Part shown: positions 5,670 through 63,914 of the stretch, piece by piece
Numbering within the stretch: the stretch's first letter is position 1
How the letters are laid out: the number at the start of each line of letters is the position of its first letter
NCBI RefSeq assembly: GCF_001194135.2
Contig: NC_068994.1
Location: 22,727,887-22,791,886 of the forward strand
DNA from: Octopus bimaculoides
Taxonomy: Eukaryota
Direction of reading: 5' to 3'
Length of the DNA: 64,000 bases
The notes under the pieces: model-generated
The model's database searches: none
What the model was told of the DNA's origin: nothing
What the model saw: the letters and a program-made list of their open reading frames with translations, nothing else
Translations under genes and position numbers: made by a program

Positions 5670-5709
<40 letters not shown>
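5670..5709. repeat. Poly-T tract (about 40 nt)
   Basis: Direct reading. Confidence 0.95.
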
Positions 5710-10080: not shown

Positions 10081-11542
10081 GTATAGTGGGTGTTAGTATT
10101 TTGAAAATACCTCATGGAATGACAACTGTGCACTGCATAGTTACAGGCTGTCCTTTGGCAACACATAGCACCTGTTCAGCCACCCTGCTAGGGATATGGT
10201 GAATTCATGGAAACTGCAGCATGGCTGATTGTGAAGAGGTAGCAGAATAGCTAACTGAGCCAATGATGCTTCTTACATTGATGCTGAGTGGAGGAATCTT
10301 AGAAAATCAATGGTCAGAATCACCAAGCTGTATCGAGAGAGTAACTGTAACACATCCATGGGGGTTGCATCCATGTTTGTGTAATTCACTATAACTCAAG
10401 CTCTTAATTCATATTCATAATAGAGGAATTGGGTGGCAACATAGTCATGGAAATCTGCAAAAGCAGTGAAAAGAAAATATTGGGTGCAAAATGGGCAGTT
10501 TAGTGACATACTGAAAAGTAGCAGGAAAGTTTGTCAAATTTTTTTTATATCTCAATTACAGCAGACCAAAATGCATAGCTATCTGAAGTTGAGAGAAAAT
10601 GAGAACTTTCAGAGCACAAAAACTCCTTTTACTGTCAAGATGCTTTTTAGTTGATGTTTGTAATTTCTTCCATATGTTATATGGGTGTTTATATTTTTAT
10701 CTGTATGTGAACAGCGTAACTTCTTGGTAAATCATTTGGAGTTGTATGTTGTAAGTGGAGAAGTTTTATTATAAGAGCTGGCTTTAAAAAACCCGCAAGT
10801 GTACGTGTGTGCTCTTTGCTATAATCTAAAAATATGGTTTTGCCTCGAACCTTTTCAATCTCAAATATTTCTTTTTGTTATTTAGTTCTTTCCATTTCTT
10901 AGCTTCTAACTCTGGCCAATTGCTGTATGGGTAATGTAGTTTTTGAAGTGCTTGGAAAAAGCCCCTAGAGAATTGGTGTGCTGTCATCTTATTTGGAATT
11001 ATATATTTGCACCGTTATGTTAAAACCATTCTTGCTTTGTCATGGGCTGCATTTCTAAGATGTAAGGCTTGAATATGCAGTACCCATTTCAAATTCTTTA
11101 AAGAGTTTAGGGATATACACTTAGTGATTAAGTAGCTAATACTATGTTGACAATATAATCAATACAAGTTACAAAATCTAAGTAGAATAAGCTAGTTCTA
11201 ATAAATATATATTTATTCAAAAACGTTTTATTTTTTCTAAAATTATATTTGTAAATGTTAAAATAATTTCTAACTATAATTTTTCAGGTTTGTTATACAC
11301 TGAATAAGTAAACATTCCAAGTGATGTCTCAGCATGGCGTTTACAAACTTGAAAACAAGTTTAATTCAACTTTGTTGCTGAAGCTTCTTTCCTTCTCTAT
11401 GTCTGATCTTTGAAATAGAAGTTAAATTGGATGTTAAGCATCATACAAAGTCAATATTTTGCAGGTGGAATTAGTAAGACGACTTAAAAAGATTTAAACA
11501 TTTCTATGACTGTCTAATTCCAGTAGTCACAGTTTTGGCTTC

Positions 11543-13615
11543 ATGTGTTCCTCTGCTTATAAACAAAAAGACACAAAAAAAAATGGTGATGCTTGTTCAT
11601 TTTTAAACTCACACCCTTTTTATTTAAATGCTCCCAATTTCCCATTCAAAATGAATACACCACATCATCACCATCATCATCATTATAATATGCCACCTAA
11701 TCATCAAATGAATTTTGATATTTGTAATCACAGCAGTAACAACAACAGCAACAACAACAGCAACAACTGTACTGCTTCCACAAATAATTGTCGGAATAAT
11801 GCTAAAAAGCTTTTACCTCCTATTGATCATCATCAACATCTCAATCATTTAATGCCAAAAAATAACAATGGTCGACAGAAAACTTTCCAACAAAACAGGA
11901 AATCTTCTACTACACCTTTACCAATATTAACTACAACAGCAATAACTGCAGCAGCAGCAACAACAACAACAACTACAACAACAGCACCTTCAAATGTTAC
12001 TAGTAAGAAAACTGCTTTGACATCATCAGTAGCTACACCACTAGCAACACTTCCCATGGCAACTACAGCTCTAACAAATAAAAGTATTCTTCCTTTCTCT
12101 ATGCTGACTCCACCATCAGAGAAAGCCAAAGACAAACCATATAAGTGTGAGACGTGTCGCAAGGCGTTTTCCCGACAATCAAATCTATCTCACCATGAAG
12201 AAACTCCAGCAGAACGTAAACATTTCCATTGTACCTACTGCTGGAAAGCATTCCCTGTGCGTGCCCGTCTTCGTGACCATGAACGTTCTCATACAGGGGA
12301 GAAACCTCATAAATGCCCCGTCTGCCCCAAAGCGTTTAGTCATCAAACTAACTTGAAAAATCATCTGAGAGTTCACTCAGGGGAAAGACCATTTGTATGT
12401 GGAATGTGTGGTAAACGTTTTAGTCATCTAACCAATCTACGTAATCATGAGAGGACTCATACTGGATTAAAACCATATATCTGTGGTCACTGTGGAAAGG
12501 GTTTTGGCCACATGACTAATTTGAAAAACCATCGTCGAACGCACACTGGAGAAAAACCATTTGTTTGCACTCATTGTGGTAAGGCTTTCAGCCATCAGAC
12601 CAACTTGAAAAACCATCAGAAAACCCATGCATCTCTAGAAAATTATGTAATGCTTGTAGGTCAGTCCAGTGCCTCTAACACTGTAGAAGAGCTCGAAAGA
12701 CTTTCTGCAGCAGCTGCTGGTGCCTTGATGCAAGCTTCTGATAATTCTGAACGACTACAAGCTGATTCAAGAGTGTCAATGTCTGATTCAAGGGTGTCAA
12801 TGTCTGATTCAAGGGTGTCAATGTCTGATTCAAGGGCATCAATGTCTGATTCAAGGGCGTCAATGCCTGATTCAAGAGTGTCAATATCTGATTCAAGAGT
12901 GTCGATGCCTGATTCAAGAGTGTCGATGCCTGATTCAAGGGCACCAATGTCAGATTCAAGGGCATCGATGTCTGATTCAAGGATGTCAATGCCCGATTCA
13001 AGGGTGTCAATGTCTGATTCGAGGGCGTCGATGTCTGATTCCAGGATGTCAATTCCTGATTCAAGAGTGTCAATGTCTGATTCAAGGATGTCGATGTCTG
13101 ATTCAAGGATGCCATTGTCTGATTCAAATATGAAAGAACAACAAAAGGAGCAACCAAGAGATACCCAATTAACGTGGCAGCCACCATCTACTCTTTCTTC
13201 ATCTAACATTGCTTCCAATTCAGTTGCTGCACGTACAGTTGAAGAATTGCAACAGTTATCTTCATTATCTTCAGCAAGTGCTTCAGCTGCACGAACTGTT
13301 GAAGAATTGCAAAAGCTATCTTCACTATCCAATTCATCAACAATTACACCTTTATCTTCACCACCTGCCTCCAGTGTACACATGCCTACACTAGAACATA
13401 TGAAGCATTCTCAGTCTTCTAGACGTATGACAGAGACACCTCATAGGTTTACCCCATCAAATGTTTGCCAAGCAGCAGAAGACTTTAACAGAATGCCTCC
13501 ACAAACTTCAGCAGCGACTAATCGCATGGTTGAAGAACTTCACAGGTTATCTGCACAATCATCTATACTTAGAATGCAACCCTTAAACAAAATTAAGGAT
13601 TCTCGTCCAAACTAG
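11543..13615 (+). CDS. C2H2 zinc-finger transcription factor, gene 1 (690 aa; 1 atypical + 5 canonical fingers; His/Asn/Thr low-complexity N-terminus; heptad-repeat C-terminal region)
   Basis: Uninterrupted 690-codon ORF with fingers at 12140-12628 and TGEKP/SGERP linkers. Splice acceptors upstream (TTTTCAG|G 11281-11288, TTTTGCAG|G 11457-11465). An alternative start at 11651 has a better context (CAAAATG). AATAAA at 13633. Confidence 0.95.
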   Translation: MCSSAYKQKDTKKNGDACSFLNSHPFYLNAPNFPFKMNTPHHHHHHHYNMPPNHQMNFDICNHSSNNNSNNNSNNCTASTNNCRNNAKKLLPPIDHHQHLNHLMPKNNNGRQKTFQQNRKSSTTPLPILTTTAITAAAATTTTTTTTAPSNVTSKKTALTSSVATPLATLPMATTALTNKSILPFSMLTPPSEKAKDKPYKCETCRKAFSRQSNLSHHEETPAERKHFHCTYCWKAFPVRARLRDHERSHTGEKPHKCPVCPKAFSHQTNLKNHLRVHSGERPFVCGMCGKRFSHLTNLRNHERTHTGLKPYICGHCGKGFGHMTNLKNHRRTHTGEKPFVCTHCGKAFSHQTNLKNHQKTHASLENYVMLVGQSSASNTVEELERLSAAAAGALMQASDNSERLQADSRVSMSDSRVSMSDSRVSMSDSRASMSDSRASMPDSRVSISDSRVSMPDSRVSMPDSRAPMSDSRASMSDSRMSMPDSRVSMSDSRASMSDSRMSIPDSRVSMSDSRMSMSDSRMPLSDSNMKEQQKEQPRDTQLTWQPPSTLSSSNIASNSVAARTVEELQQLSSLSSASASAARTVEELQKLSSLSNSSTITPLSSPPASSVHMPTLEHMKHSQSSRRMTETPHRFTPSNVCQAAEDFNRMPPQTSAATNRMVEELHRLSAQSSILRMQPLNKIKDSRPN
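12761..13117 (+). repeat. Coding minisatellite, 17 x 21 bp, encoding (A/S/P)DSR(V/A/M)(S/P)(M/I/L)
   Basis: Units such as TCTGATTCAAGGGTGTCAATG counted directly; 357 bp. Confidence 0.97.
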
Positions 13616-36656: not shown

Positions 36657-37395
36657 GTATAACCAACTTAATGCTAGCAGTAATACAACATGTAGAACTA
36701 GGACTAGGAAGGTTTTGTGATTTAAGCCAGCTTTCAATATGGCCGTAAAAACAAATATGGGTAGGGAATTCTTAAAATTAGTCTCTAGACATTTTCAATC
36801 TAGCCATAAGTTTTATAGAATATTTAATAGAAGAACGTTTAAGATCAGCTATTCTTGCTGCAAAAACTTTGCCTCTTTTATTAACCAACACAACAATAAG
36901 ATAATTGCAAATAACCAGAGTGCTGATTCTTTTCCTAAAAATTTCAATTGCAAAGATGGGACCTCTTGTCCGTTGGATGGAAAATGTCTGGAGAAAGGAA
37001 TCGTGTATAGAGCCAAAGTGCAGATAGAAGGCTCACACAAATATAGAACTTACACAGGGGCTTCTGAAAATTCTTTCAAAACCCAATTTTATTCTCATAG
37101 AAATTCCTTCCGATACCCTGAAAATAGGACAAAGACCAGCCTGGCAAAATATGTCTGGGAATTAAAAGAAAACGAAATCCAACATTTGAACGTGACAGGG
37201 AGAATTTTAGATAGAGCATCACCTTACAGACATGGTGCGCATAAAAAACCCATCAAATGTGATTTATGTCTGTTGGAGAAATTCTATATTTTATTCCAGG
37301 ACAATAGTGCTTTTAATCAAAGACACAAACTCTTGAATTCCTGCAGACATGCACCAAAATTCAAAATGTCAGCTAACAATATACCATATGGATAG
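36657..37395 (+). mobile_element. Penelope-like element (Neptune-type) C-terminus with GIY-YIG endonuclease, 5'-truncated
   Basis: CPLDGKCLEKGIVYRAKV..YTGASENSFK..HRNSF..TSLAKYVWELK..CDLCLLEKFYIL..NQRHKLLNSCRH. The upstream frame reads RKVL*FKPAF (conserved W of W-F-N-P-P changed to TGA at 36718), so it is a pseudo-ORF. Confidence 0.92.
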
Positions 37396-41011: not shown

Positions 41012-41612
41012 TATGAGGTGATGAAGCACGACCGTCGAACATTAGGCCTCACCGAGGCAATGACTAGTGACCGAGACCTTTGGAAATATGCTGTGCTTGA
41101 GAAGACCCAGCAAGCCAAGTGAGACCATAACCCGTGGACTATGCCAGTGGTGTAACCAGCCCACTTAGGTGTACCTTTCTTTCATTGGGCACTAAACTCG
41201 GTTTGCAAAGACCTGTTGAGGCAAGTGAAATTGAAATCAAATTCAATGACAGCACCACATGACTGGCATCCGTGCTAGTGGAGCACTAAGAGCACCATCC
41301 AAGCATGATCATTGCCAGGGCCGCTGACTGGCCCCTGTGCCAGTGGTATGTAAAAAGCACAATTTGAGCATGATCGTTACCAGCGTCGCTTTAGGTGACA
41401 CATAAAAACACCAGTTGAGCGTGGCCGTTGCCAGTGGCATGTAAAAGCACCCACTACACTCTCGGAGTAGTTGGCATTAGGAAGGGCATCCAGCTGTAGA
41501 AATTCTGCCAAATTAGGCTGGAGCCTGGTGTTGCCATCCGGTTTCACCAGTCCTCAGTCAAATCGTCCAACCCATGCTAGCATGGAAAGCGGACGTTAAA
41601 CGATGATGATGA
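41012..41612 (+). mobile_element. RTE LINE 3' end (ORF2 terminus, 3' UTR, (GAT)n tail)
   Basis: EVMKHDRRTLGLTEAMTSDRDLWKYAVLEKT, then the shared tail ending GGACGTTAAACGATGATGATGAT; tail repeated at 42054-42252 across the gap. Confidence 0.88.
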
Positions 41613-42374
41613 TAGGTAGATANNNNNNNNNNNNNNNNNNNNNNNNNNNNNNNNNNNNNNNNNNNNNNNNNNNNNNNNNNNNNNNNNNNNNNNNNNNNNN
41701 NNNNNNNNNNNNNNNNNNNNNNNNNNNNNNNNNNNNNNNNNNNNNNNNNNNNNNNNNNNNNNNNNNNNNNNNNNNNNNNNNNNNNNNNNNNNNNNNNNNN
41801 NNNNNNNNNNNNNNNNNNNNNNNNNNNNNNNNNNNNNNNNNNNNNNNNNNNNNNNNNNNNNNNNNNNNNNNNNNNNNNNNNNNNNNNNNNNNNNNNNNNN
41901 NNNNNNNNNNNNNNNNNNNNNNNNNNNNNNNNNNNNNNNNNNNNNNNNNNNNNNNNNNNNNNNNNNNNNNNNNNNNNNNNNNNNNNNNNNNNNNNNNNNN
42001 NNNNNNNNNNNNNNNNNNNNNNNNNNNNNNNNNNNNNNNNNNNNNNNNNNNNNGCGTGGCCGTTTTCGTGCGGGTGACACGTAAAAGCACCCACTACACT
42101 CTCTGAGTGGTTGGCATTAGGAAGGGCATCCAGCTGTAGAAATTCTGCCAAATTAGGCTGGAGCCTGGTGTTGCCATCCGGTTTCACCAGTCCTCAGTCA
42201 AATCGTCCAACCCATGCTAGCATGGAAAGCGGACGTTAAACGATGATGATGATAGGTAGATAGATAGATAGATAGGTCTAAAAGAGTGTAGAAAGTTAGA
42301 AATACCAGTGGAGAAGTTTGTGGGTGATGAGAGGAGACAGGATCAACTGGCGCAACCAGTTGAGTGTGTGATAT

Positions 42375-51370: not shown

Positions 51371-52040
51371 ATGTATTCTTCTAAATCTTTGTACAATCCT
51401 ACAATTCTGGACAATAGCAGCCAACATCTTGATAAATCCTTGTATAATGCTTCGATATTAGATGACAACTGTCGAAGACTTGACCATGATATTATACAGA
51501 AAAGCCACCTGGAACAGTCCAGTATGAAAATGGGTGTTATCCCAAGAAGTGAGGATTCTCATAATGATCACCTAAAGTCCTATAACAGTCACTATAGCAG
51601 TAATAGCAACAATAGCCTCAAAATGAAAATAATAACGTCAGGCTCTTCTGGGTTTCCATACATTGCTGAGAATAATATGAACAGGAACAGTGATATTATT
51701 ACTAATTCTGAAAACATCACCACCAACAACGCCAATACCAAAAACAAGATAGGGCTTATTCCTAATTCTCCTTACATTGGTATCAGCCTTAGTATGAAGA
51801 AACCATATAAATGTGGAACCTGTCGTAAAGGTTTTGCTCAACGCGGCCACTTGATAAACCATGAATTAGGTGGCCGGAAGCATTTTTTCTGTACGTTCTG
51901 TAACAAAGCCTTCTCACAGGAGATTATACTGCGTAATCATGTAAGAACACATACTGGTGAGCGGCCATTTCACTGTAGTTACTGTACTAGAACCTTTTGC
52001 CAGGTGACTGAATGGAGAAATCACGAAAGAACTCATACAG
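51371..52040 (+). CDS. C2H2 zinc-finger gene 2, first coding exon (atypical ZF1, ZF2, ZF3)
   Basis: ORF with PYKCGTCRKGF..HELGGRKHF FCTFC.. FHCSYC..HERTHT. Acceptor TTTTCATAG|G at 51034/51035; donor ACAG|GTAAG at 52040/52041 (phase 1). Confidence 0.92.
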
Positions 52041-52329
52041 GTAAGATACAGTATGATTTCTTTTCTTTACATTATATTTTCACATGAGTATACCATCTTC
52101 TTTTTTTACTAGATTATTATGCTTAATCATAGTGAGATCAATTCACTACTTTTGAGTAACTGAAATTCAAGGTATAGTATAATGCATCATATCAGTAGCA
52201 GAACCCCAAATAATCTCTTAAATAAATAAATGTGTAAAGAAACGAAAAACATTAAAAAAAAAAGGATTTCAGTAATAATTTCAATAATTATCCAGTTTAT
52301 ATCATACGGATGCAGACAGTTGCATACAG

Positions 52330-52812
52330 AAGTGCTGATCACTTAAAGTGGATGGAACATGTGTAAAAAGGGAGACCCAAGAAGACATGGGACAAAATAT
52401 TGAAGGATGATCTCAAGACACTGAGCCTTGCAAAGGAGAAGACTAAAGACCGAGATATTTGGTACCTTGTTGTACTCAACAAGACTCATCTGTCACAGTA
52501 GAATTGATACCAGTGCTGGTACCACACAAAAACACTCATGCTGGTGTCACATTAAAAGCATTGGTGCTGGTGCCACATTAAAAGCATTGGTGCTGGTGCC
52601 ACAGAAAAAGCACCCAGTGCACTCTGTGGATTGGTTGGTGTTAGGAAGGGCATCAAGCCATAGAAAGTTGGTGTTAGGAAGGGCATCAAGCCATAGAAAC
52701 CATGCCAGAACAGACAATAGAGCCTGGGGTGGCCCTTGGCCTTACCAGCTCAGGTCAAAACCATCCAACTTGTGCCAGCATGGAAAATGGACGTTAAATG
52801 ATGATGATGAAA
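52330..52812 (+). mobile_element. RTE LINE 3' end in intron of gene 2
   Basis: KRETQEDMG..LKDDLKTLSL..KTKDRDIWYLVVL remnant, tandem GGTGCCACA..AAAAGCA units, internal duplication TTGGTGTTAGGAAGGGCATCAAGCCATAGAAA, (GAT)n tail. Confidence 0.85.
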
Positions 52813-54081
52813 ATTAAAGTATACATCTTACTAAGTAAATATAGCTCTGTAGTTGTTATGAATATTTACACTTGGTGTTTTACTCATATTCTTCATTGAT
52901 TACCTTCACCTAAAGTTACATTCACAGTATTGTATATCAGTGCCAAATTTATGTAATTTATATTTGTATTGAAGTAAATTAATTCAGTTTACATTCAATA
53001 CCAAAATGAAAATGATAAATATTATGATGACAATGAATTCCAAAGCTTTATTTATACATACAAAACTGAAGTAGAAATTTGATATGACATTAAGTTACAA
53101 TTAAATGGGAATTCTTAAACATTTCAAACACAAAGCTTTGTAAAAATCCTGTAAAATCATAATTTTCATCACCTTACCTTCATAATGATCAGGGTGAATG
53201 ATATCATTTATGAATCCTCTTCATCACTTTCAGTAATAATTGGTTGTATGTCAACTGCTACATCTTCATCATCATCATCATACGATATTCATCTTCTGTA
53301 CTATCCAGTGCATTTAAATTTCCACATTTCTACAATGACTTGATAATAATGTCAACATGTATTATTTTTTGTTAAGTAACAATCCATTTCCATTAAAGAG
53401 ACAATGATGTAGACAGCATACTATCATCTTTCTCCATCATTTATTCTCATTATCATGCTAATCTAATGGTTGCAAAACATTTGTGAATCCTTCAGGATTT
53501 TCTGCTGTGTCAGTCAGTGTTTGTGATTTATACACTATCAAACTGAAAGTCTTCACTAGATGTAACCTTAAGTAATCTCAAACAGGCAAGCACTTTTCTT
53601 TCTGAAACCCTCTAAGATGTAAATTTCAAATTTCCTTCATTTACTGCTTCTATCCCCTTTCATCTATTCAGCCATGTGACTGCATATTTACAATAATTCC
53701 TTCCAGAAATTTCTCCTTTGGTGTAGTATTTCTCTTAAAAACAACAATCTGTATTAATTTAGTAGAGCATGCCTTACATGAAGGAACTAAAACAAAACTT
53801 ATGTCCAGTAATTTTCACCAGTACTAATTTCTCTCCTGTTTGGTTCAAGTGTTTAATCTGTTTCCAATGCATGATAACCTAAAATCTTTTATTGATTTCT
53901 GATTATAAATCAGAGAAGTTTTACTATCTTATCTTTTTGACCATCAGGCAAATTTCATGTAATCTTCATTCTTTACCAAAGAGCTAAATGATACAATTTT
54001 GTACACAATCTTAGCCTTTGTCTTAGAATATAAATTCTATCCATTTTTAGTTCCTTTTGCACATAGGTTCACATAGCTTCT

Positions 54082-55480
54082 TCATCATCATCGTTTAACG
54101 TCCGCTTTCCATGCTAGCATGGGTTGGACGATTTGACTGAGGACAGGTGAACCGGATCGAGCAGGGCCATCTACCTGAGGAGGTTTGTGTTTTGTCTACC
54201 TTCCTACTTATTAGGACTTTGGTTTTAGCTAGGTTGACTCTAAGGCCCTTTGATTCTAGTCCTTGCTTCCACACCTGAAACTTCTCTAGTTCTGATAGTG
54301 ACTCAGCAATTAGGGCAAGGTCATCAGCATAGAGGAGCTCCCAGGGGCATCCCATCTTGAATTTCTGTGTTATTGCCTGGAGGACTATGATAAATAGGAG
54401 GGGGCTGAGGACTGAACCTTGGTGGACCCCTACCTCTACCCAGAATTCTTCACTGTACTCATTGCCAACCCTCACCTTACTGACAGTGTCCCTTTACATG
54501 GCTTGCACAGCTCTCACTAACCATTCATCTATCCCTAGTTTCCTCATTGACTACCAGATAAGGGAGCAGGAGACCCTGTCAAAGGCTTTCTCCATGTCAA
54601 CGAAAGCCAGGTACAGAGGTTTATCTTTGGCTAGGTATTTCTCCTGCAGCTGTCTTACCAGAAATATAGCATCAGTGGTGTTTTTCCCTGGAACGAACCC
54701 AAACTGCATCTCATCTAAGCTGACTCTCTCCCTAATTAGTTGGGCTATGAACCTCTCCGTGACCTTCATTACCTGGTCCAACAACTTGATTCCTCTGTAA
54801 TTGTTTGTGTCTAAAGCATCACCTTTACCTTTATAGCAGTTGACTATGGTGCTGCTACACCAATCATTGGGTATGACTCCTTCCTGTATCACCTGGTTAA
54901 CAATACGGATGACTAGGCTATAGCAGACACGGCCAGATATTTTGAGCATCTCAACAGTGATTCCTGATGGGCCGGGGGATTTCCCTGTCTTCATACTCTT
55001 AATTGCTTTATCTACCATGGTACTGTCAATTAGGATAGCTGGTCCCTCTGTTGGGTCGACATGCAGCAGACTCTCTTCCTCCCATTCATTCTCTTTATTA
55101 AGTGACCTTTCATAGTGGCGTCTCCAAACTTCTCTCTTTGCAGCCTTGTTTAGTGCAAGTGAGCCATCAACCATGCGGACACATTTCTCTCCTACGACCT
55201 CACCACTCTCTCTCGCACACTGTCTTGCAACACGAAATACTTCAAGTCTTTGGTCCTCACAGCGCAGAACATTGGCAAATTTTTTCTTATCTGCTTCCCT
55301 TCTGGCTAAATAAACCTATCTGCTAGCTTCCCTTCTGGCAGTCTGATACAATTCCCTGCTACCTCCGTTCTTCCAGTCCTTCCAAGCCTGTTTCTTTTGT
55401 CTAATAGCCCTGTCAACCACATTGTTCCACCACCACATTTTTCATCTTGATGATTTTCAAGTATTCGTTCATTAACTTTA
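54082..55480 (-). mobile_element. Young RTE LINE fragment (RT domain) joined directly to the 3' tail
   Basis: KSPGPSG, NYRGIKLLDQVMKV, QFGFVPG, FVDMEKAFDRV, GVHQGSVLSPLLF, LLYADDL; one or two frameshifts; tail with (GAT)n at 54082. Confidence 0.95.
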
Positions 55481-55598
55481 TCCTTCAATTGTAGCTACCT
55501 GCAAGATTCTCTGACACATCAAATCCTCTTACTACACATAGTTATTTGTCTTGGTCAATTTGATAACTACTGCTTCTTCATTTATATATATATATTAT

Positions 55599-56648
55599 AT
55601 CATCATCATCGTTTAACGTCCGCTTTCCATGCTAGCATGGGTTGGACGATTTGACTGAGGACTGGTGAAACCGGATGGCAACACCAGGCTCCAGTCTGAT
55701 TTGGCAGAGTTTCTACAGCTGGATGCCCTTCCTAACGCCAACCACTCAGAGAGTGTAGTGGGTGCTTTTACGTGTCACCCGCACGAAAACGGCCACGCTC
55801 GAAATGGTGTCTTTTATGTGCCNNNNNNNNNNNNNNNNNNNNNNNNNNNNNNNNNNNNNNNNNNNNNNNNNNNNNNNNNNNNNNNNNNNNNNNNNNNNNN
55901 NNNNNNNNNNNNNNNNNNNNNNNNNNNNNNNNNNNNNNNNNNNNNNNNNNNNNNNNNNNNNNNNNNNNNNNNNNNNNNNNNNNNNNNNNNNNNNNNNNNN
56001 NNNNNNNNNNNNNNNNNNNNNNNNNNNNNNNNNNNNNNNNNNNNNNNNNNNNNNNNNNNNNNNNNNNNNNNNNNNNNNNNNNNNNNNNNNNNNNNNNNNN
56101 NNNNNNNNNNNNNNNNNNNNNNNNNNNNNNNNNNNNNNNNNNNNNNNNNNNNNNNNNNNNNNNNNNNNNNNNNNNNNNNNNNNNNNNNNNNNNNNNNNNN
56201 NNNNNNNNNNNNNNNNNNNNNNNNNNNNNNNNNNNNNNNNNNNNNNNNNNNNNNNNNNNNNNNNNNNNNNNNNNNNNNNNNNNNNNNNNNNNNNNNNNNN
56301 NNNNNNNNNNNNNNNNNNNNNNNNNNNNNNNNNNNNNNNNNNNNNNNNNNNNNNNNNNNNNNNNNNNNNNNNNNNNNNNNNNNNNNNNNNNNNNNNNNNN
56401 NNNNNNNNNNNNNNNGTTCGTACGCATGCGTCATACAGTCTGCCTTTTACTCTGAGTGAGAGTCCCTTTGTCGCCAGCAGGGGTAAGAGCTCTCTAAACT
56501 TTGCCCAGGCTATTCTTATTCTAGCAGCTACACTTTCAGCGCACCCACCCCCACTACTAACTTGGTCGCCCAGATAGCGGAAGCTATCGACTACCTCTAG
56601 TTTTTCACCCTGGAATGAGATAGAAGTTGTTTCCTGTTTGTTTGCAGT

Positions 56649-56650
<2 letters not shown>
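55599..56650 (-). mobile_element. Young 5'-truncated RTE LINE 3' end spanning the N gap
   Basis: 56417-56650 encodes the post-RT region (FRYLGD..RIRIAWAKFRELLPLL..KGLSLRVKGRLYDACVR); 55599-55822 is the shared tail; CpGs are retained. Confidence 0.85.
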
Positions 56651-56684
<34 letters not shown>

Positions 56685-56729
56685 GGAAGTATTTCTTCTG
56701 ATCCCACTGCTGAAGAGGATTGACCTGCA

Positions 56730-56925
56730 AGAGTCTGTGTCAGTACCACATTAGAAGCACCTAACATACACTGTAAAGTGGTTGGTGTTCGGAAGGGCAT
56801 CCAGCTGTAGAAACAAAGCCAAATCAGACTGCAACCTGGTGCAGCTCCCCAGCTGGCCAGCTCTGGTCAAACCATCCAACCCATGCCAGCATGGAAAACA
56901 GATGTTAAATGATGATGATGATACT
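56730..56925 (+). mobile_element. RTE tail copy, opposite orientation to 55599-55822
   Basis: GTGGTTGGTGTTCGGAAGGGCATCCAGCTGTAGAAAC..CCATGCCAGCATGGAAAACAGATGTTAAATGATGATGATGAT. Confidence 0.85.
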
Positions 56926-59149
56926 GGGAAGTATTTTCTCATAAAACCACATCAATTATCCTCCTATCAAGTGAGATCGCAACATGACTTTTATGCAGTC
57001 TTCTTGACCACTATAGCTGATAGAAATAGTGAACAGTTGTACTGATATTTGTAGTATCATTGTGTTAAGAGTTTCCACCTTTGGGGTTTTTTTTTTTTTG
57101 TCTTACCAACACTGGTCACATTGCTTCATAGCTGTGTTTACATCTACATACTAGAGGTTGATGGTGTGTTATGTACTGATAAGTACTACCCATTCAGAGA
57201 TATGATAGTTACAGTGAATAATAATGCTAAACGTATTTGGTCTAGTTTGTATCACTAATTATATTACAGCAATTGCAGTTCTTCAGTAATGAAGTAGTAA
57301 AATGTGTAGCATAATATTTCAGTGCTTAATAACTGGAAAAAAATACACTTTCTGACCATAACATTACAAGGGATAATTCTATGATCAGCATATATTGATC
57401 TGTTATCTATGTAAAAGTAGAGTTGACTTTTACATGATATTGACTTTTATTTGAATGTCTATGGAATTTATCCTTTATTTCAGTGATTCTCTGAGATTGC
57501 ATCAATTAAGAAGTTAAAGAGAGATGTATTATGTTAACCCAGTCATTGCTATAAGTTATAGTTTTATTGACCACATATTCTTATAATTCTACACCATTCT
57601 ATTGTATGCTTTTAATCATAAATTCTGTTCTCTCTACTAGTGAGTACATGATAAATATATGCAGCCATTTCAACCAGAATGGTGGAAGAAGGCATTATTA
57701 GCATTCTTGGTAGCCAGGATAGCTGATAGACTAATGGGTTTCAAACTAATTTTACATAATGTCATAGCATTAATGATCTCTACTTTTTATCAAAAGTAGG
57801 ATTAACAGATGTGCAAAAGCAACTTCGTTAGTATAGTTAACTATTTCCATGAACATGTCTAGAAACAAATGAAAGTATGGCCAAAATACAAAATATATAA
57901 AACAACTACCTAAATAATTGGTTACCCACCAGTCTGATAGGTGTAGGAATGAAATAGATTTTTTGCTTACCATTTAATGAGTCACCATTTATAAACAACG
58001 GTTCCCTTCACAATGTGGAATGTACTTCTTAACATGAATTAGTGAATTTAAGTTATTTCACTTCAAGTGAAACTTCCAAACAGTGCTGCATCTGTTTTGT
58101 CTGTTTTGGCACGGCTTCCACAACTGGATGCGCTTCCTAATGCCATCTGTTACTATCACTAGTAAGGTCATATTGCAACTTGCAAGTCTAAAGGATCTCA
58201 TGAAGGAGAGCAGAAGAGAAAGTGAGTGTGGTGATTTTAGGGAAGGTAATGAGAGATGGTAAAGGATGAGAGAAATAGTTTTATGGTTGTGAGAGGTTGA
58301 TAGTGGAGAAACTTTTTCTTGCCCATTATTATATTTATGGCAAAATCGTCCTTCTTTTATAAAGTTTGCCCTCCTTTTACTTTTGTCTATATTTTATGTA
58401 GTGATAAGTCTTGAATTGGAACAAACAAAAGTAAATAGTCAGGAGTTTTGAGTCATGAAGCTGATTAATTGAACTCCAATCTCTTCTAAAAATTTGAAAG
58501 TGAAATATTAAAAAAAGTTTTCCCTCCTCCTTATTCTCTCACTAGAAATCATCATTTTCAATACTGCACTCTGGCATTGTTAATATATTTAGAAATTAAG
58601 ACATTCAGTACAAAGACTGCCACATGTTATACTTCGTATATTTGTTGCATTCAAAAGTCATTGAAATTCAGATTGACACTTACTAAACAAAGTTAAAATA
58701 ATTTTACATAATATAAAAGAAGAGTAGAATGTTGAAGAAATGAGGAAAAAATGGATTTGGCAAAAATATCTACAAAGTTCACATCTAAAATATGTCAAAT
58801 GGTGAATAGCAGGTGTTAACCTTGTGAATTGACTTTTTATCATTATTGCAATAATGATTTTTATGTCAGAGTTGGTAAATTTTGTATATACATTCAGAAA
58901 AAGCAGTAAGTATGTCAGGGATAGTTGCAGAAGTTTTAAGAGCATCAGACTGTGTTGGTATTATGCTAGTTACTCACTTGAGCCTTTTGATGTTATTTCT
59001 AACTGAAATGCATCTCTCTATATTTTAATTAAATTCTAAAATAATAATGAATTTAAACTTGTTTTGTAAAACCATTACCTTTTATTTATTATTTATTCTA
59101 TAAATTTTGTATGGAATCTAATTGTTTCTCAGCCTCTCAAATTAGAGCT

Positions 59150-59360
59150 ATGTATATTTTCTTTCACTTGTTTTACTTGTTTCTCAGCTGTGGCCATGCT
59201 GGGACACCTCTTTGAATTTTTAGTTGAATGAATCAGCCCCAGTATTTCATTTTTAAGCCGGTCACTTATTTTATCAATCTCGGGGATGCAAATACACCAA
59301 CACCAGTTGTCAAGTGGTGGGTGGGCTGGGATACAAACATAGACACAAAGACACACACAC
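59150..59360 (-). mobile_element. 3' half of CORE-type SINE
   Basis: TTTACTTGTTTCTCAGCTGTGGCCATGCTGGGACAC..ACACCAACACCAGTTGTCAAG. Confidence 0.75.
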
Positions 59361-59589
59361 AAGGGGCTTAATATTCTACGATGACAGGTGGTATTGAGTA
59401 TGTTTGTGACAGAATGGTTAACTATCGTTAGTTACATAACCATTCTAGAGTGGGCTTAATGTAGCTGACAAGAGAGAACTTGGGCTTGGAGTTTGGGTTT
59501 CATATGTGGAATAACATGCCTCGGAGGATAGCTTTAGTCAACCATCTAGTTGTTTCTTGGACAGGGATGAAACTCAAATACTGCCAGTT

Positions 59590-60040
59590 ATACAATTAGT
59601 AGTACTCTGAATTGTTAACTAACTTGAGGTAGCATAGTATGGGCTTTGCATAGTATTTGTATGCATGGTAGATAAGGTTGTGTTTGGATGACCTAATAGG
59701 TGTAGAGATGATGATGGTTTGGTAGAAATGGGATGTGGAGGTGAGAAAGAGATCAAGAGTGTATCTGTGTTGGTCAGGAACATGAGTAAAAGATGACATT
59801 AGTTGATATAAAAAGTTGAAGATTGTGAAAGATTCAGTTTCTGCACTGGTGACATTTGTGTAGGTTGATTGTGAGATCCAAATGTAAACATTGAAGTCAC
59901 TAGTGGAAGGTGAAGTGTGATGATGTCCTTTATACAAGAAAATATGTGGTTGAAAAGTTGTAGGTGGTCAGGGGAGTTCATAGAACTGTAAGGGAGTTGG
60001 ATAGGGAAATTTTGAGTCTGAGTACATGGCAGTTTTTTTT
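59590..60040 (-). mobile_element. CR1/Jockey-group LINE endonuclease remnant
   Basis: SDFNV..HVPDQHRYTLDLFLTS..PIRSSKHNLI (AP-endonuclease GDFN / LDL / SDH motifs). Confidence 0.75.
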
Positions 60041-60471
60041 TTTTAGTTTTTTTTTTATGTTGAAATCTAAATGAAAGGGGGAAATGATGAAGAGAGTGGA
60101 ATATATATATTCTCAGACACCATCTTTTGGGTGAAATTTGAATACAGAGTGTACTGAATAGCAGAGATGAACTATGGATAATGGTTGAGAGGATTTGTGT
60201 CTTTGAGAGCAGTAGAATGCATATTAGTAAGAGTTTAGACTGGATTAAAGTCCATAAATGTTTATGAAGCATAGGGATAATTGTTTAGCAGGTTTAGATT
60301 TAGTTTTAGTATCTAATGAAACAGAAGATCATGATGGCATTGGTGCTAGTGACAACAACAATATTGATGATGATGAAATATTAGGTTTGGTACACTATGA
60401 CAGATATTTAAATGTTAAAATTTAAATCTTATGAGCAACATATCCATATATTCTACTAAATTGTATGCTTT

Positions 60472-61026
60472 ATTTAGAACAAGGGTGGGGAAACTTTTTA
60501 GTGTGGTGGTCAAAAATTTCCAAAAATGAAAAAAGGGTCCATGGGCAGATCACAAGTTCTAACTCTTATATCTGTATAAATCTTGTATATATCTATATAT
60601 AATTCGATATGCATTAATAAAGATAAGCTTAATACATTAAATTAACACATAACATCTTCATTAATGCCACCACTAAATTTAGGACATTTATATTATTCAT
60701 GAGGTATTCTATATTTTTCAGCTAGAGTGTAGTTGGGTCTCAGTGGGGTGGTACAAACCTAGCAATATGTATTTTGTAGTGAAAACAAAATTTCCATTGA
60801 AATGGCAATTGCTGGATGATTTTCTGTTTGAGTCTAACCATTTTAAGCTGTAGTAGAAATGCGACCTGTGTCACAAAGAGGCATATGAGTATTGTATAAA
60901 TTTTATAATTGAAAAATTGACTATATTTTGCATTTATGAGTTTACCAGCCTGTAGGCACAATAAAATGGGCTCGCAGGCGCAATTGCACTCACGAGTGGG
61001 GGTTTTCCCCCACCCTTGATTTAGAA
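60472..61026. mobile_element. hAT-superfamily MITE (539 bp, 60480-61018) with perfect 8-bp TSD
   Basis: ATTTAGAA|CAAGGGTGGGGAAAC ... GTTTTCCCCCACCCTTG|ATTTAGAA. Confidence 0.9.
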
Positions 61027-61489
61027 GGTCAATTATTGCTCTATTCATTTAAATTTTATATGTAAAAGATGTTAAAAACTTACACATACACACTCACATG
61101 CACAAATCAAAGGCTTTCCTCTCAATAATATCATAATTCTGTGAGTAGAAGAGGGGGAGATGAAAGGCTATAGAACAGATGCATCAGATAGAATAGATAG
61201 AGGAAGAGGGGTGAAGATATGGAAAAGGCAATAGTCAGTGGAGAGGGAGGATGCATGCACTATACAATAGACCAGCAGGTTGCAAATACTATCCTCTTAT
61301 CTTAATGAGTATTTGCCAAGTTTGTGCAGTAAACAGGGTCTTCTGCAACTACATATTGCCAGTTAGTATAATCCTTTGTCTTTCTACATAATATAGTCCT
61401 TTGTCTAACTATATATCACTAGTTAGTGTAGTCTTAACATCTTAAGATCATTTCTTACCAACTCATCCCAAGTCTTTCTTGGTCTTCTT

Positions 61490-61960
61490 CATTTACAAGT
61501 ACCATTTATTGTGAATGCTTGTCACTTGCTTATGCAGCTGTCATCCACCATCAGTATCATATGCCCATACCATTGCAGTCTCCTCTCTTGCATGCTAAAT
61601 CTGATTCCCCTTATACCCAATTTATTTCTCAGTTCATACTTTGTCGCTCATGTACACTTGCAAGGCACATCCAGCAAAGCAAGCTCTTCTTATTTCTTTC
61701 TAGCCTTCATTTCCCTTCGGCAATGAAGGATCATATCATGCTGCCATGCAACAGCACACTTCACATACAAGTTTCATATAATCTTTCCATGACCTTGAGG
61801 GAAAAATCCTTTGTTGCCAGCAGAGGTAACAGCTTCCTGAACATTGCCCAACCTGTTCTTATTCTGGTTACCACACGTTTGGAACACCCCCTTCATTGCT
61901 AATTTGGTCGCTTAAGTAAAAGTTATCTTCTACTTTTTGGGAGCTATCTGAGTATTTCAG
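61490..61960 (-). mobile_element. RTE LINE post-RT remnant
   Basis: Aligns by eye with 56417-56650 and 29900-30250. Confidence 0.8.
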
Positions 61961-62029
61961 AAAATCATTTCATGAATGTAATAAGCACTAAGATGATGCT
62001 TATAACCCCAATGTACCTGTTGCACTACC

Positions 62030-62600
62030 CATAATCTGACCATATAGTAAAAGAATCACTTTCAAGAAAATTGTCAATTTTAAAAGCTTTGTAATAAGAG
62101 ATATAAATCTGAACGGTGAAGGTAGTCGAGAATATGCTTCTGCTGTTGAAAATGATCAGCTGAAGATTTAGAAGAAAATCTACAACAAACTGTTTGAATG
62201 GTGGGAGGTGACATTTTAATAATTTTAAATCATCCAAAGCAAGTCAATGAAAAAGAGAGAAGTTTGACAAAAGGCTTCCACATAAATTCAATGAAAACCA
62301 AAGAATTGTCATTTTGAAGTGTATTCTTTACTGCTTTTGCATAACAAAAATGATCCATTTCTTGACCTGACTGTGACCTCTGAAGAAAGCTGGTTAATTT
62401 CTGACTATCAGAAATAATCTGTCCTTGTTAAATTGTGAGGTTTCAAGAAAATTCTTAAAGTATCTTAATCTGATCATGGTCCTTGTAAAAACTGTGTGGA
62501 ACTGGTATGATCTTTTCACCAGAAGAATATTACACCAGAGATTTACTTCCAAATATTGAAGAGGGTGGCTCATAAAATAGCATGATATTAATTAAACCAA
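62030..62600 (+). mobile_element. Old mariner transposase remnant
   Basis: HNKNDPFLDLTVTSEESW resembles the mariner first-Asp motif (N..FLD.IVT.DE.W). Confidence 0.6.
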
Positions 62601-63042
62601 TAATTAAGTTAATGAAAAAGCGAATCATTTTTTTTTTTTTTTTTTTCTCCCATTACACTTCTACCCATATTTTGCATGAAGGATATTACAGAAACTTAGC
62701 AGTTGAGGTTATGAAATTTGCTTTTATCGTTGTTCTGCCAAAGAATTGTCACCTACTGATTATTGTCTTAAAAAATCAACACATTTTAAAAGTAACAAAA
62801 TGCCTTCAAAGATTTTTTAAAGTTTGAGATCTCTGAGTTATTTTTTTTTATGTAGTTAATAATTTTTCTTGTTCGCAAATTTTTTTATTGGTCATGTTGC
62901 TTATGTATCAATTTATTAATTCAAATTTTCAAATGAGTCATTAATTTCTGTAAAGACTTGTAATTTGAATGTTATTTTTATGTTATTTTTATGTGTATAA
63001 GATCTTTTTCTAACAGTTAATTTTTTTTGTTTTTTAATTTAG

Positions 63043-63914
63043 GTGAGAGACCTTTCAAGTGTGCTCTGTGTCCCAAAGCATTTTCTCAGCAAGGCAATAT
63101 GAAAATCCATATGCGAACCCATTCTGGTATAAAACCATACAAATGTGATACTTGTGGAAAGTGTTTTTCCCAAAAGAATAATTTGCGCAATCATATTCGC
63201 ACCCACACTGGGGAAAAGCCACATAGGTGTGCAGTTTGTCAGAAATCCTTTGCTCAGGTGACGAATCTCAACAATCATGAACGGACACACACTCTAGAGG
63301 AGTTACAGAGGGTTTTCATCCAGCAACCTCCTGCTCACGCTCAGCCCATGAACTCACATCAGAACTTGTCTATGACGTCTTCTATTCCATCATCACCATC
63401 ATCTTCTTCATCATCATCTCCTGTTGCAGCGGTTAGCAATGCAGTAACAGGTTGTATGTCATTACCTTCATCATCTTCTGGAATCTCCTCTTCAGTGCCA
63501 ACTACTGTCCGGCCACAGGTGTTGAAAATCCCCACCACGTGGATGATGTCCATGGCAAACTCTACACCATCATCTTCTTTGTCTTTATCATCAGTTTCCT
63601 CAGCCATATCACCATCTTTGACAAATGTCTCATCATATGCACATCACCCACCACATACACATAGCCATCCTTACCAAACATCAACAAGTGCACATTTGCC
63701 TCCTTTGCCAACCATTCCCATGCCACCCAGCTGGCAAAATGGTTATGCTACGTGTTCACCTACAATGATCCCAAATCCGTCTTCAAGGTGGGGCTCTTCT
63801 GTAATGATGGCCAATCAGTCGGCATTTCCAGGAATGTTACTTCTTGATGATGTTAGAACTGATATTCAAGACTCCCCTGAAAATTTAACACAAAGATGGC
63901 AAGTTAATTCATAG
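63043..63914 (+). CDS. C2H2 zinc-finger gene 2, last coding exon (ZF4-ZF6 + Ser/Pro-rich tail)
   Basis: Polypyrimidine tract and TTTAG|GT acceptor at 63042/63043. Joining to 52040 gives ACA G|GT GAG AGA CCT = TGERP in frame. Total CDS 1542 nt = 513 aa. Confidence 0.93.

Follow-up and report, generated by a model that had tools for sequence, protein, structure and literature searches.

What DNA would a protein read if four of its adjacent zinc fingers carried the same base-contacting residues on different scaffolds? This question is raised by gene A, a C2H2 zinc-finger open reading frame (ORF) in a stretch of 64,000 nucleotides of Octopus bimaculoides (NC_068994.1, positions 22,727,887 to 22,791,886), which as a whole is referred to here as the window. 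The translation of gene A contains six C2H2 units, numbered here as zinc finger (ZF) 1 to 6. An earlier note on this DNA had claimed that the recognition helices of ZF3–ZF6 are HQTNLKN, HLTNLRN, HMTNLKN and HQTNLKN, and the translation reproduces all four, with the coordinates exact: the interval 12308–12628 spans two residues before the first Cys of ZF3 through the last His of ZF6. We find that selection for uniform specificity is the best reading of this identity, and we propose that the array would recognize a periodic target with an adenine at the center of each triplet.

Uniform contact residues in ZF3–ZF6

When the four fingers are aligned, 11 of the 28 positions of the unit are invariant. 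Seven of these are structural or consensus residues (C, C, K, F, L+4, H+7 and H+11), and the remaining four fall precisely on −1 (H), +2 (T), +3 (N) and +6 (N), the positions that are most variable in ordinary finger arrays. By a simple count, made post hoc, the chance that four invariants land on those 4 of the 21 non-structural positions is 1 in C(21,4) = 5985. The codons behind these residues differ. H−1, T+2, N+3, L+4 and N+6 are each encoded by more than one codon among ZF3–ZF6, H+7 being the exception, and over the six conserved helix residues the pairwise codon identity is 18/36 (0.50), where the codon usage of gene A itself predicts ∼0.48. The 28-position comparison and the codon tally together bear out the description of contact positions that are fixed while scaffold residues and codons vary. 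At the level of DNA, the finger cores are 55–68% identical and the finger-plus-linker units 55–63%, which only slightly exceeds comparisons with ZF1, ZF2 or gene B, a paralogue located 40 kb downstream on the same strand.

These data bear directly on the possibility that the identity is a functionless by-product of recent tandem duplication, or of PRDM9-type gene conversion between fingers. Tandem Repeats Finder does detect an 84-bp period over ZF5–ZF6 (77% matches), and these two fingers form the closest pair, with a core identity of 68%. However, cores that are merely 55–68% identical are far from the near-identical DNA of neighboring fingers in PRDM9-like arrays, half of the amino acids in common between fingers carry different codons, and the helix codon identity is that of random expectation. 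The scaffold residues also differ, resembling those of different fingers of the relatives of gene A. With the synonymous sites of the helices fully randomized, recent duplication and gene conversion are excluded as a source of the identity. We rejected this explanation, which the codon and scaffold data already largely refute, as extremely improbable.

Comparison of the scaffolds alone shows that the fingers of gene A are no closer to one another than to fingers of relatives, namely gene B and P0104, a 791-residue protein with 13 fingers from the transcriptome assembly SRR29271456 (contig L002, 2579 nt). The CPK.FS scaffold of ZF3 (CPKAFS...HLRVHSG) occurs also in ZF4 of gene B and in two P0104 fingers, and its H[LM]R.H spacing is found in gene B ZF4 and in one P0104 CPK finger. 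ZF6 has HQ[KR]TH(T)AS in common with the terminal finger of P0104 (HQRTHTASEL). The matching of gene A and gene B fingers from 48-nt scaffolds is not collinear and, the sequences being short, is merely suggestive. The randomized synonymous sites, and scaffolds that match different finger types of relatives, support the claim that selection rather than recent duplication is at work. Because the contact identity is not a product of copying, selection for uniform specificity is its best reading. These observations suggest four long-distinct fingers in which the contact residues were made or kept uniform; convergence and retention of an old state are indistinguishable, and both require that selection acted in the gene A lineage.

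Runs of this kind are rare. Among 1,850 fingers of 120 poly-zinc-finger proteins, returned by a search with the full-length gene A protein, adjacent fingers with the same four contact residues form 24 runs of length two, two of length three and none of length four. The H/T/N/N set itself was sought with a profile (A2) in which only S-H-x-T-N-L-x-N at a 28-residue spacing was kept and the rest masked; it took the place of an earlier profile (A1) that retained real sequence and scored generic fingers high. In local tests A2 gives 66 bits to gene A and at most 23 bits to generic poly-finger proteins, and a synthetic two-finger array used for calibration scores 40 bits (E = 5e-5). Searched against 5.8 billion protein clusters, A2 produced 2,933 word-sharing candidates with two at E ≤ 10, neither of them a zinc-finger protein, and no protein with at least two such helices was found in this collection, from which the octopus protein itself is missing. 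Because gene A's own protein is missing, cephalopod coverage of the collection is incomplete, and the claim of uniqueness depends on this one custom profile search. No match to A2 was obtained among PDB sequences, and literature searches for the helix strings and for four-letter module names were likewise negative. Judged by these sequence searches, the H/T/N/N set appears otherwise essentially absent from the protein collection searched.

A proposed periodic, adenine-centered target

ZF2–ZF6 all have the C-X2-C-X12-H-X3-H spacing, F10 and L16 of the hydrophobic core are invariant, and the linkers are TGEKP, SGERP, TGLKP and TGEKP. A single-sequence AlphaFold2 model folds them as beta-beta-alpha units with a predicted local distance difference test (pLDDT) score of 65–82, and the finger domain matches DNA-bound arrays of ZNF568 (1.4e-85), Aart (6.4e-58), PRDM9 (2e-57) and CTCF (2.4e-43). 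In spacing, core, linkers and modeled fold, ZF2–ZF6 appear to be a canonical C2H2 (Krueppel-type) DNA-binding array. ZF1 is degenerate, its second zinc-binding His being replaced, and is trailed by RKHF just before ZF2, an element that is also present in gene B; its AlphaFold2 confidence is low and its helix truncated. Arabidopsis REF6 has a finger without this second His, which makes use of a His of the following finger and is not DNA-binding (PMC12264921). Lacking one zinc ligand, ZF1 probably does not read bases.

We suggest that gene A encodes a transcription factor of an octopus-lineage C2H2 family, in which fingers 2–6 would wrap the major groove canonically with one finger per three base pairs. 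The reading of adenine by Asn+3 is a well-defined preference (PMC3668361), and arrays engineered so that each finger has Asn+3 recognize A-NN-A-NN-A, where the pair of bases at a junction depends on +5/+6 of the one finger together with −1/+1/+2 of its neighbor (PMC3575815). Canonical linkers and Asn+3 in every finger would therefore place an adenine at every third base of a periodic target. Moreover, the three finger–finger junctions are equivalent (K/R-N then H-x-T), so the site would be a tandem trinucleotide whatever the junction bases are. ZF3–ZF6 would read the same triplet four times running, giving a 12-bp site of period 3 with a central A in each triplet.

The outer bases of the triplet can be approached from published codes. 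In the structural code, Asn and Gln specify adenine and Arg, Lys and His specify guanine (PMC12264921), which, applied to ZF3–ZF6, predicts AAG. Two designed modules resemble the fingers of gene A (PMC7317221 Table 1). RKDNLKN, with a +3 to +6 segment, NLKN, identical to that in gene A, targets AAG, and HRTTLTN, which pairs His −1 with Asn +6 as the gene A fingers do, targets AGT, so that AAT is allowed as well. The likeliest site of ZF3–ZF6 would be 5′-(A-A-G/T)4-3′, that is (AAK)4 with K being G or T. ZF2 (VRARLRD) would add an anchoring triplet of approximately 5′-CGN-3′ at the 3′ side (Asp+6 for C and Arg+3 for G by the code of PMC12264921). An anchor finger that differs in this way from the other four favors a composite site or the boundary of a tract over sliding on a pure repeat. 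From the sequence we infer DNA binding, the periodicity of the target and its 5′ and 3′ base identities, and the 5′ and 3′ bases of each triplet are uncertain. We consider the chances about even that gene A is a sequence-specific DNA-binding factor with a periodic, A-centered tandem-triplet target close to (AAK)4.

Several points weigh against this target. His −1 is ambiguous, being assigned G by the structural code and T in designed modules, and Thr at +2 is too small to confer much specificity. Many natural multi-finger proteins use only some of their fingers or dock non-canonically. The base preference of Asn+6 depends on context (PMC4330361), which makes the 5′ A that the earlier note had expected from it weaker than claimed; the 3′ base, left as N in its (AAN)4 proposal, can on the other hand be narrowed from any base to G or T on account of His −1 (PMC12264921, PMC7317221). 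Finally, the window is not enriched in (AAT)n or (AAG)n, which occur at chance level, although 64 kb says little genome-wide. Trinucleotide repeats are rare in it and its microsatellites are almost all dinucleotide. With one mismatch allowed, (AAT)4 is observed 4 times versus 2.8 expected, and (AAG)4 twice versus 0.5. For (AAC)4 the count is 17 versus 0.8; 13 of the 17 lie in the gene A exon, where such sites encode Asn/Ser and Thr runs and form the only dense cluster in the window (11730–11767 and 11928–11986). It is pure speculation that gene A would carry its own sites if its fingers read AAC-like repeats.

A more far-reaching proposal, which we regard as unlikely, is that trinucleotide microsatellites, as (AAT)n or (GAA/AAG)n tracts, are the natural target of gene A. 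Having four iso-specific fingers, it could then bind in any 3-bp register; occupancy would grow with tract length and ZF2 would anchor the protein at the tract boundary. It might thereby mark or regulate the repeat-rich DNA of the octopus genome, in which repeats have expanded, and would be an example of selection making pre-existing, non-identical fingers uniform in specificity. The window lends no support to the link with simple repeats drawn in the earlier note, given the dinucleotide nature of its microsatellites and the chance-level counts above. The suggestion of a reader of retroelement tails is not borne out either: the RTE-like fragment in the window ends in GATGATGATGAAGAAG, a (GAT)3 repeat at about 54090–54075 on the minus strand, and not in an AAN repeat. 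Recognition of a (GAT)3 tail would call for G as the 5′ base, a preference that is not predicted for Asn+6, so we rejected the RTE tail as an unsupported target.

Two other modes of binding compete with the (AAK)4 target. Gene A might bind A-tracts, or A+T-rich, poly(dA:dT)-like DNA in general, with His −1 tolerating A and low specificity. The family context is compatible with this, in that a Q/N/N pattern, read as AAA, occurs in gene B (QKNNLRN, QVTNLNN) and in P0104 (QRTNLAN, QKINLDN, QQINLRN), adenine is read by both Asn and Gln (PMC12264921), and A12/T12 tracts are frequent in the window, with 61 overlapping positions, some of them in a T58 run at 5670. In ZF3–ZF6 of gene A, however, the family's usual Gln at −1 is replaced by His and Thr +2 is uniform, a pattern suggestive of a directed shift from AAA to another specificity, and His −1 is assigned G (PMC12264921) or T in designed modules (PMC7317221), but not A. 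We consider the A-tract mode improbable. It could also be that the uniform fingers do not serve canonical base reading at all, and instead bind RNA or single-stranded nucleic acid, contact proteins, or act as spacers with only some fingers on DNA. Spacer or non-canonical fingers are documented in TFIIIA, CTCF (ZF8) and Zfp568 (ZF2) (PMC12264921), and ZF1 of gene A is clearly non-canonical. Against this stand the canonical spacing, hydrophobic core and TGEKP-type linkers of ZF2–ZF6, as well as the fact that the invariant residues are exactly the four canonical DNA-contact positions rather than other surfaces, so that we think a non-canonical role quite doubtful.

Designed, natural and related arrays

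One set of parallels to the proposed (AAK)4 array is engineered. Beside the AAG and AGT modules discussed above, the designed ANN-reading set includes QRANLRA (AAA), the six-finger protein Aart (PDB 2I13), which matches the finger domain of gene A at 6e-58, and the "finger-stitched" arrays in which Asn+3 reads adenine every third base (PMC3575815). The designed arrays are, however, engineered with a different triplet for each finger and directed at non-repetitive targets, whereas gene A is natural and has four fingers of one specificity.

Among natural proteins, the repeated fingers of PRDM9-type and young KRAB arrays are recent, near-identical DNA copies. Adjacent fingers of such arrays may have common contact residues and are often tied to repetitive DNA (PMC12264921), whereas the finger copies of gene A are old, with saturated synonymous sites. 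A second natural comparison is with zinc-finger proteins that bind simple repeats. GA repeats are bound, for example, by the Drosophila GAGA factor and CLAMP, and GT repeats by Combgap. They have in common with gene A the idea of a C2H2 protein on a short tandem repeat, which for gene A is a prediction; their targets are dinucleotide or pentanucleotide repeats, and to our knowledge none of them uses four fingers of identical contact residues.

The relatives of gene A show which of its features are common in the family. Gene B is similar in having a degenerate first finger with RKHF, five canonical fingers and an (L/V)EEL motif after the last, and gene B and P0104 alike often have Asn at +3 and +6. 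The P0104 helices are related in type (QQTEWRN, QQGNLKI, QKINLDN, QQINLRN and QRTNLAN). In contrast to gene A, however, gene B and P0104 have Gln or Leu at −1 and mixed residues at +2 and +6, each finger has a different helix, and no finger of either carries His/Thr/Asn/Asn. On these sequences, Asn at +3 and +6 appears to be a family habit, and His −1 with Thr +2 across four fingers appears special to gene A. The genes also differ in structure: in gene B a phase-1 intron of 11 kb interrupts the Gly codon of a TGERP linker, and gene A has no intron in its finger region. As a side observation, the P0104 fingers occur in recurring triads (xQINLRN, QQGNLK/R-I/T, QKINLDN), and the linker after each QKINLDN finger is one residue shorter (TGDLF or TGELF).

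With its octopus locus and nearby tandem paralogue, gene A appears to belong to the known cephalopod lineage-specific expansion of C2H2 genes, of which ∼1,450 are reported for Octopus bimaculoides (PMC12513265). Well over a thousand C2H2 genes are present in octopus genomes, and in a 2025 survey the binding sites of octopus C2H2 proteins and any link to repeats are described as still unknown (PMC12513265). The class of gene is known; its novelty lies in combining fingers that are old and diverged with identical contact residues, the rare H/T/N/N set and a testable periodic target. The prediction that gene A offers, a target of period 3 centered on A, is unusually simple and easy to check, and it comes with evidence that selection and not copying keeps four fingers alike. 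Were the prediction true, a cephalopod zinc-finger protein would for the first time be concretely paired with a repeat class, and engineered iso-specific arrays would have a natural counterpart. A non-periodic motif would still be useful, as a counter-example to prediction from the code.

Gene structure and other features of the window

The features of gene A, gene B and the repeats within them are collected in Table 1. The 690-residue product is called on Octopus bimaculoides GCA_001194135.2 (CM046614.1:22736429-22744501, ∼22.74 Mb). The ORF is intact and lies in surrounding DNA of 33–39% G+C, in a window of 30–43% G+C with several assembly gaps and many dinucleotide microsatellites. Because of a candidate splice acceptor upstream, further coding exons 5′ of the ORF are possible. 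By eye, the first ∼200 residues consist of His, Asn, Ser, Thr and Ala low-complexity runs, encoded by repeats of the (CAT)n and (AAC)n type, and inspection of the ORF by eye reveals neither a KRAB nor a SET domain.

Table 1. Positions of features discussed in the text, numbered from the first nucleotide of the window
Feature	Position	Strand	Details
Possible splice acceptor, 5′ of gene A ORF	11518-11523		ttccag
Gene A, single-exon C2H2 zinc-finger ORF	11543..13615	+	690 amino acids; end position includes the stop codon; from translation
N-terminal low-complexity region of gene A	11663..11986	+
His7 run in gene A	11663-11683	+
Asn/Ser-rich tract in gene A	11732-11767	+
Thr/Ala run in gene A	11945-11986	+
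Gene A ZF1	12140..12208	+	Degenerate; helix RQSNLSH; C-X2-C-X12-H, second His replaced (HHEETP)
Gene A ZF2	12224..12292	+	Canonical; helix VRARLRD, unrelated to ZF3–ZF6; linker TGEKP
Gene A ZF3	12308..12376	+	Helix HQTNLKN; linker SGERP; sequence HKCPVCPKAFSHQTNLKNHLRVH
Gene A ZF4	12392..12460	+	Helix HLTNLRN; linker TGLKP
Gene A ZF5	12476..12544	+	Helix HMTNLKN; linker TGEKP
Gene A ZF6	12560..12628	+	Terminal finger; helix HQTNLKN; tail HQKTHASLEN
VEEL[E/Q/H][R/Q/K]L(S) motif in gene A	12683-12703, 13238-13258, 13298-13318, 13529-13549	+	4 copies
In-frame 21-bp tandem repeat in gene A	12762..13127	+	17.4 copies, 85% matches
Gene B exon, N-terminus to ZF3	51371..52040	+	ZF1 QRGHLIN (degenerate, without second His), ZF2 QEIILRN, ZF3 QVTEWRN; GT donor 52041
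Degenerate first finger of gene B	51806-51889		RKHF retained before ZF2
RTE-like reverse-transcriptase fragment	54095-55174	-	Within the 11-kb gene B intron (52041-63042)
Assembly gap	~55.8-56.4 kb		Within the gene B intron
Gene B exon, ZF4 to C-terminus	63043..63914	+	ZF4 QQGNMKI, ZF5 QKNNLRN, ZF6 QVTNLNN; AG acceptor 63041-63042
LEELQRV motif of gene B	about 63296-63316		Directly after the last finger

The 21-bp repeat of gene A, which directly follows the fingers, codes for 17 heptads of the form DSR[VAM][SP][MIL][SP] and is much younger than the finger repeats. Long minus-strand ORFs at 12661–13383 are by-products of this in-frame repeat, and no other zinc-finger-coding frames overlap the finger region of gene A on either strand. 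The VEEL motifs are possibly effector or partner-binding elements. They seem to resemble the amphipathic helices by which some proteins dock to co-repressors, for example the Sin3-interaction motif found in some KLF proteins, and they and the heptad repeat may have a regulatory role.

Protein searches with gene A were partly defeated by these low-complexity repeats, and by additive scoring of many fingers, which inflates poly-zinc-finger proteins. The full-length search had vertebrate poly-zinc-finger proteins on top, with no orthologue and no self match. In a search with the non-finger parts nothing scored, probably as low-complexity words filled the candidate list. An exhaustive search with the C-terminal 329 residues gave top matches only to the DSR heptad repeat, which drew hundreds of unrelated xDSRxxx repeat proteins. 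No orthologue of gene A was found in the searchable protein collections, where an exact look-up of the 690-residue sequence was also negative.

Two further elements of the window deserve mention. Inverted copies of one element, at 41558-42187 on the minus strand and 55665-56459 on the plus strand, have near-identical opening ORFs (MKPDGNTRLQ.NLAEFLQLDALPNANHSESVVGAFTCHPHENGH) and each enters an assembly gap; probably the element is a dispersed repeat at which the assembly breaks. Finally, an ORF of 218 amino acids at 36739-37395 on the plus strand has Cys-rich and GIVYRAKV...YTGAS segments, which by eye resemble the GIY-YIG-type nuclease modules that mobile elements carry.

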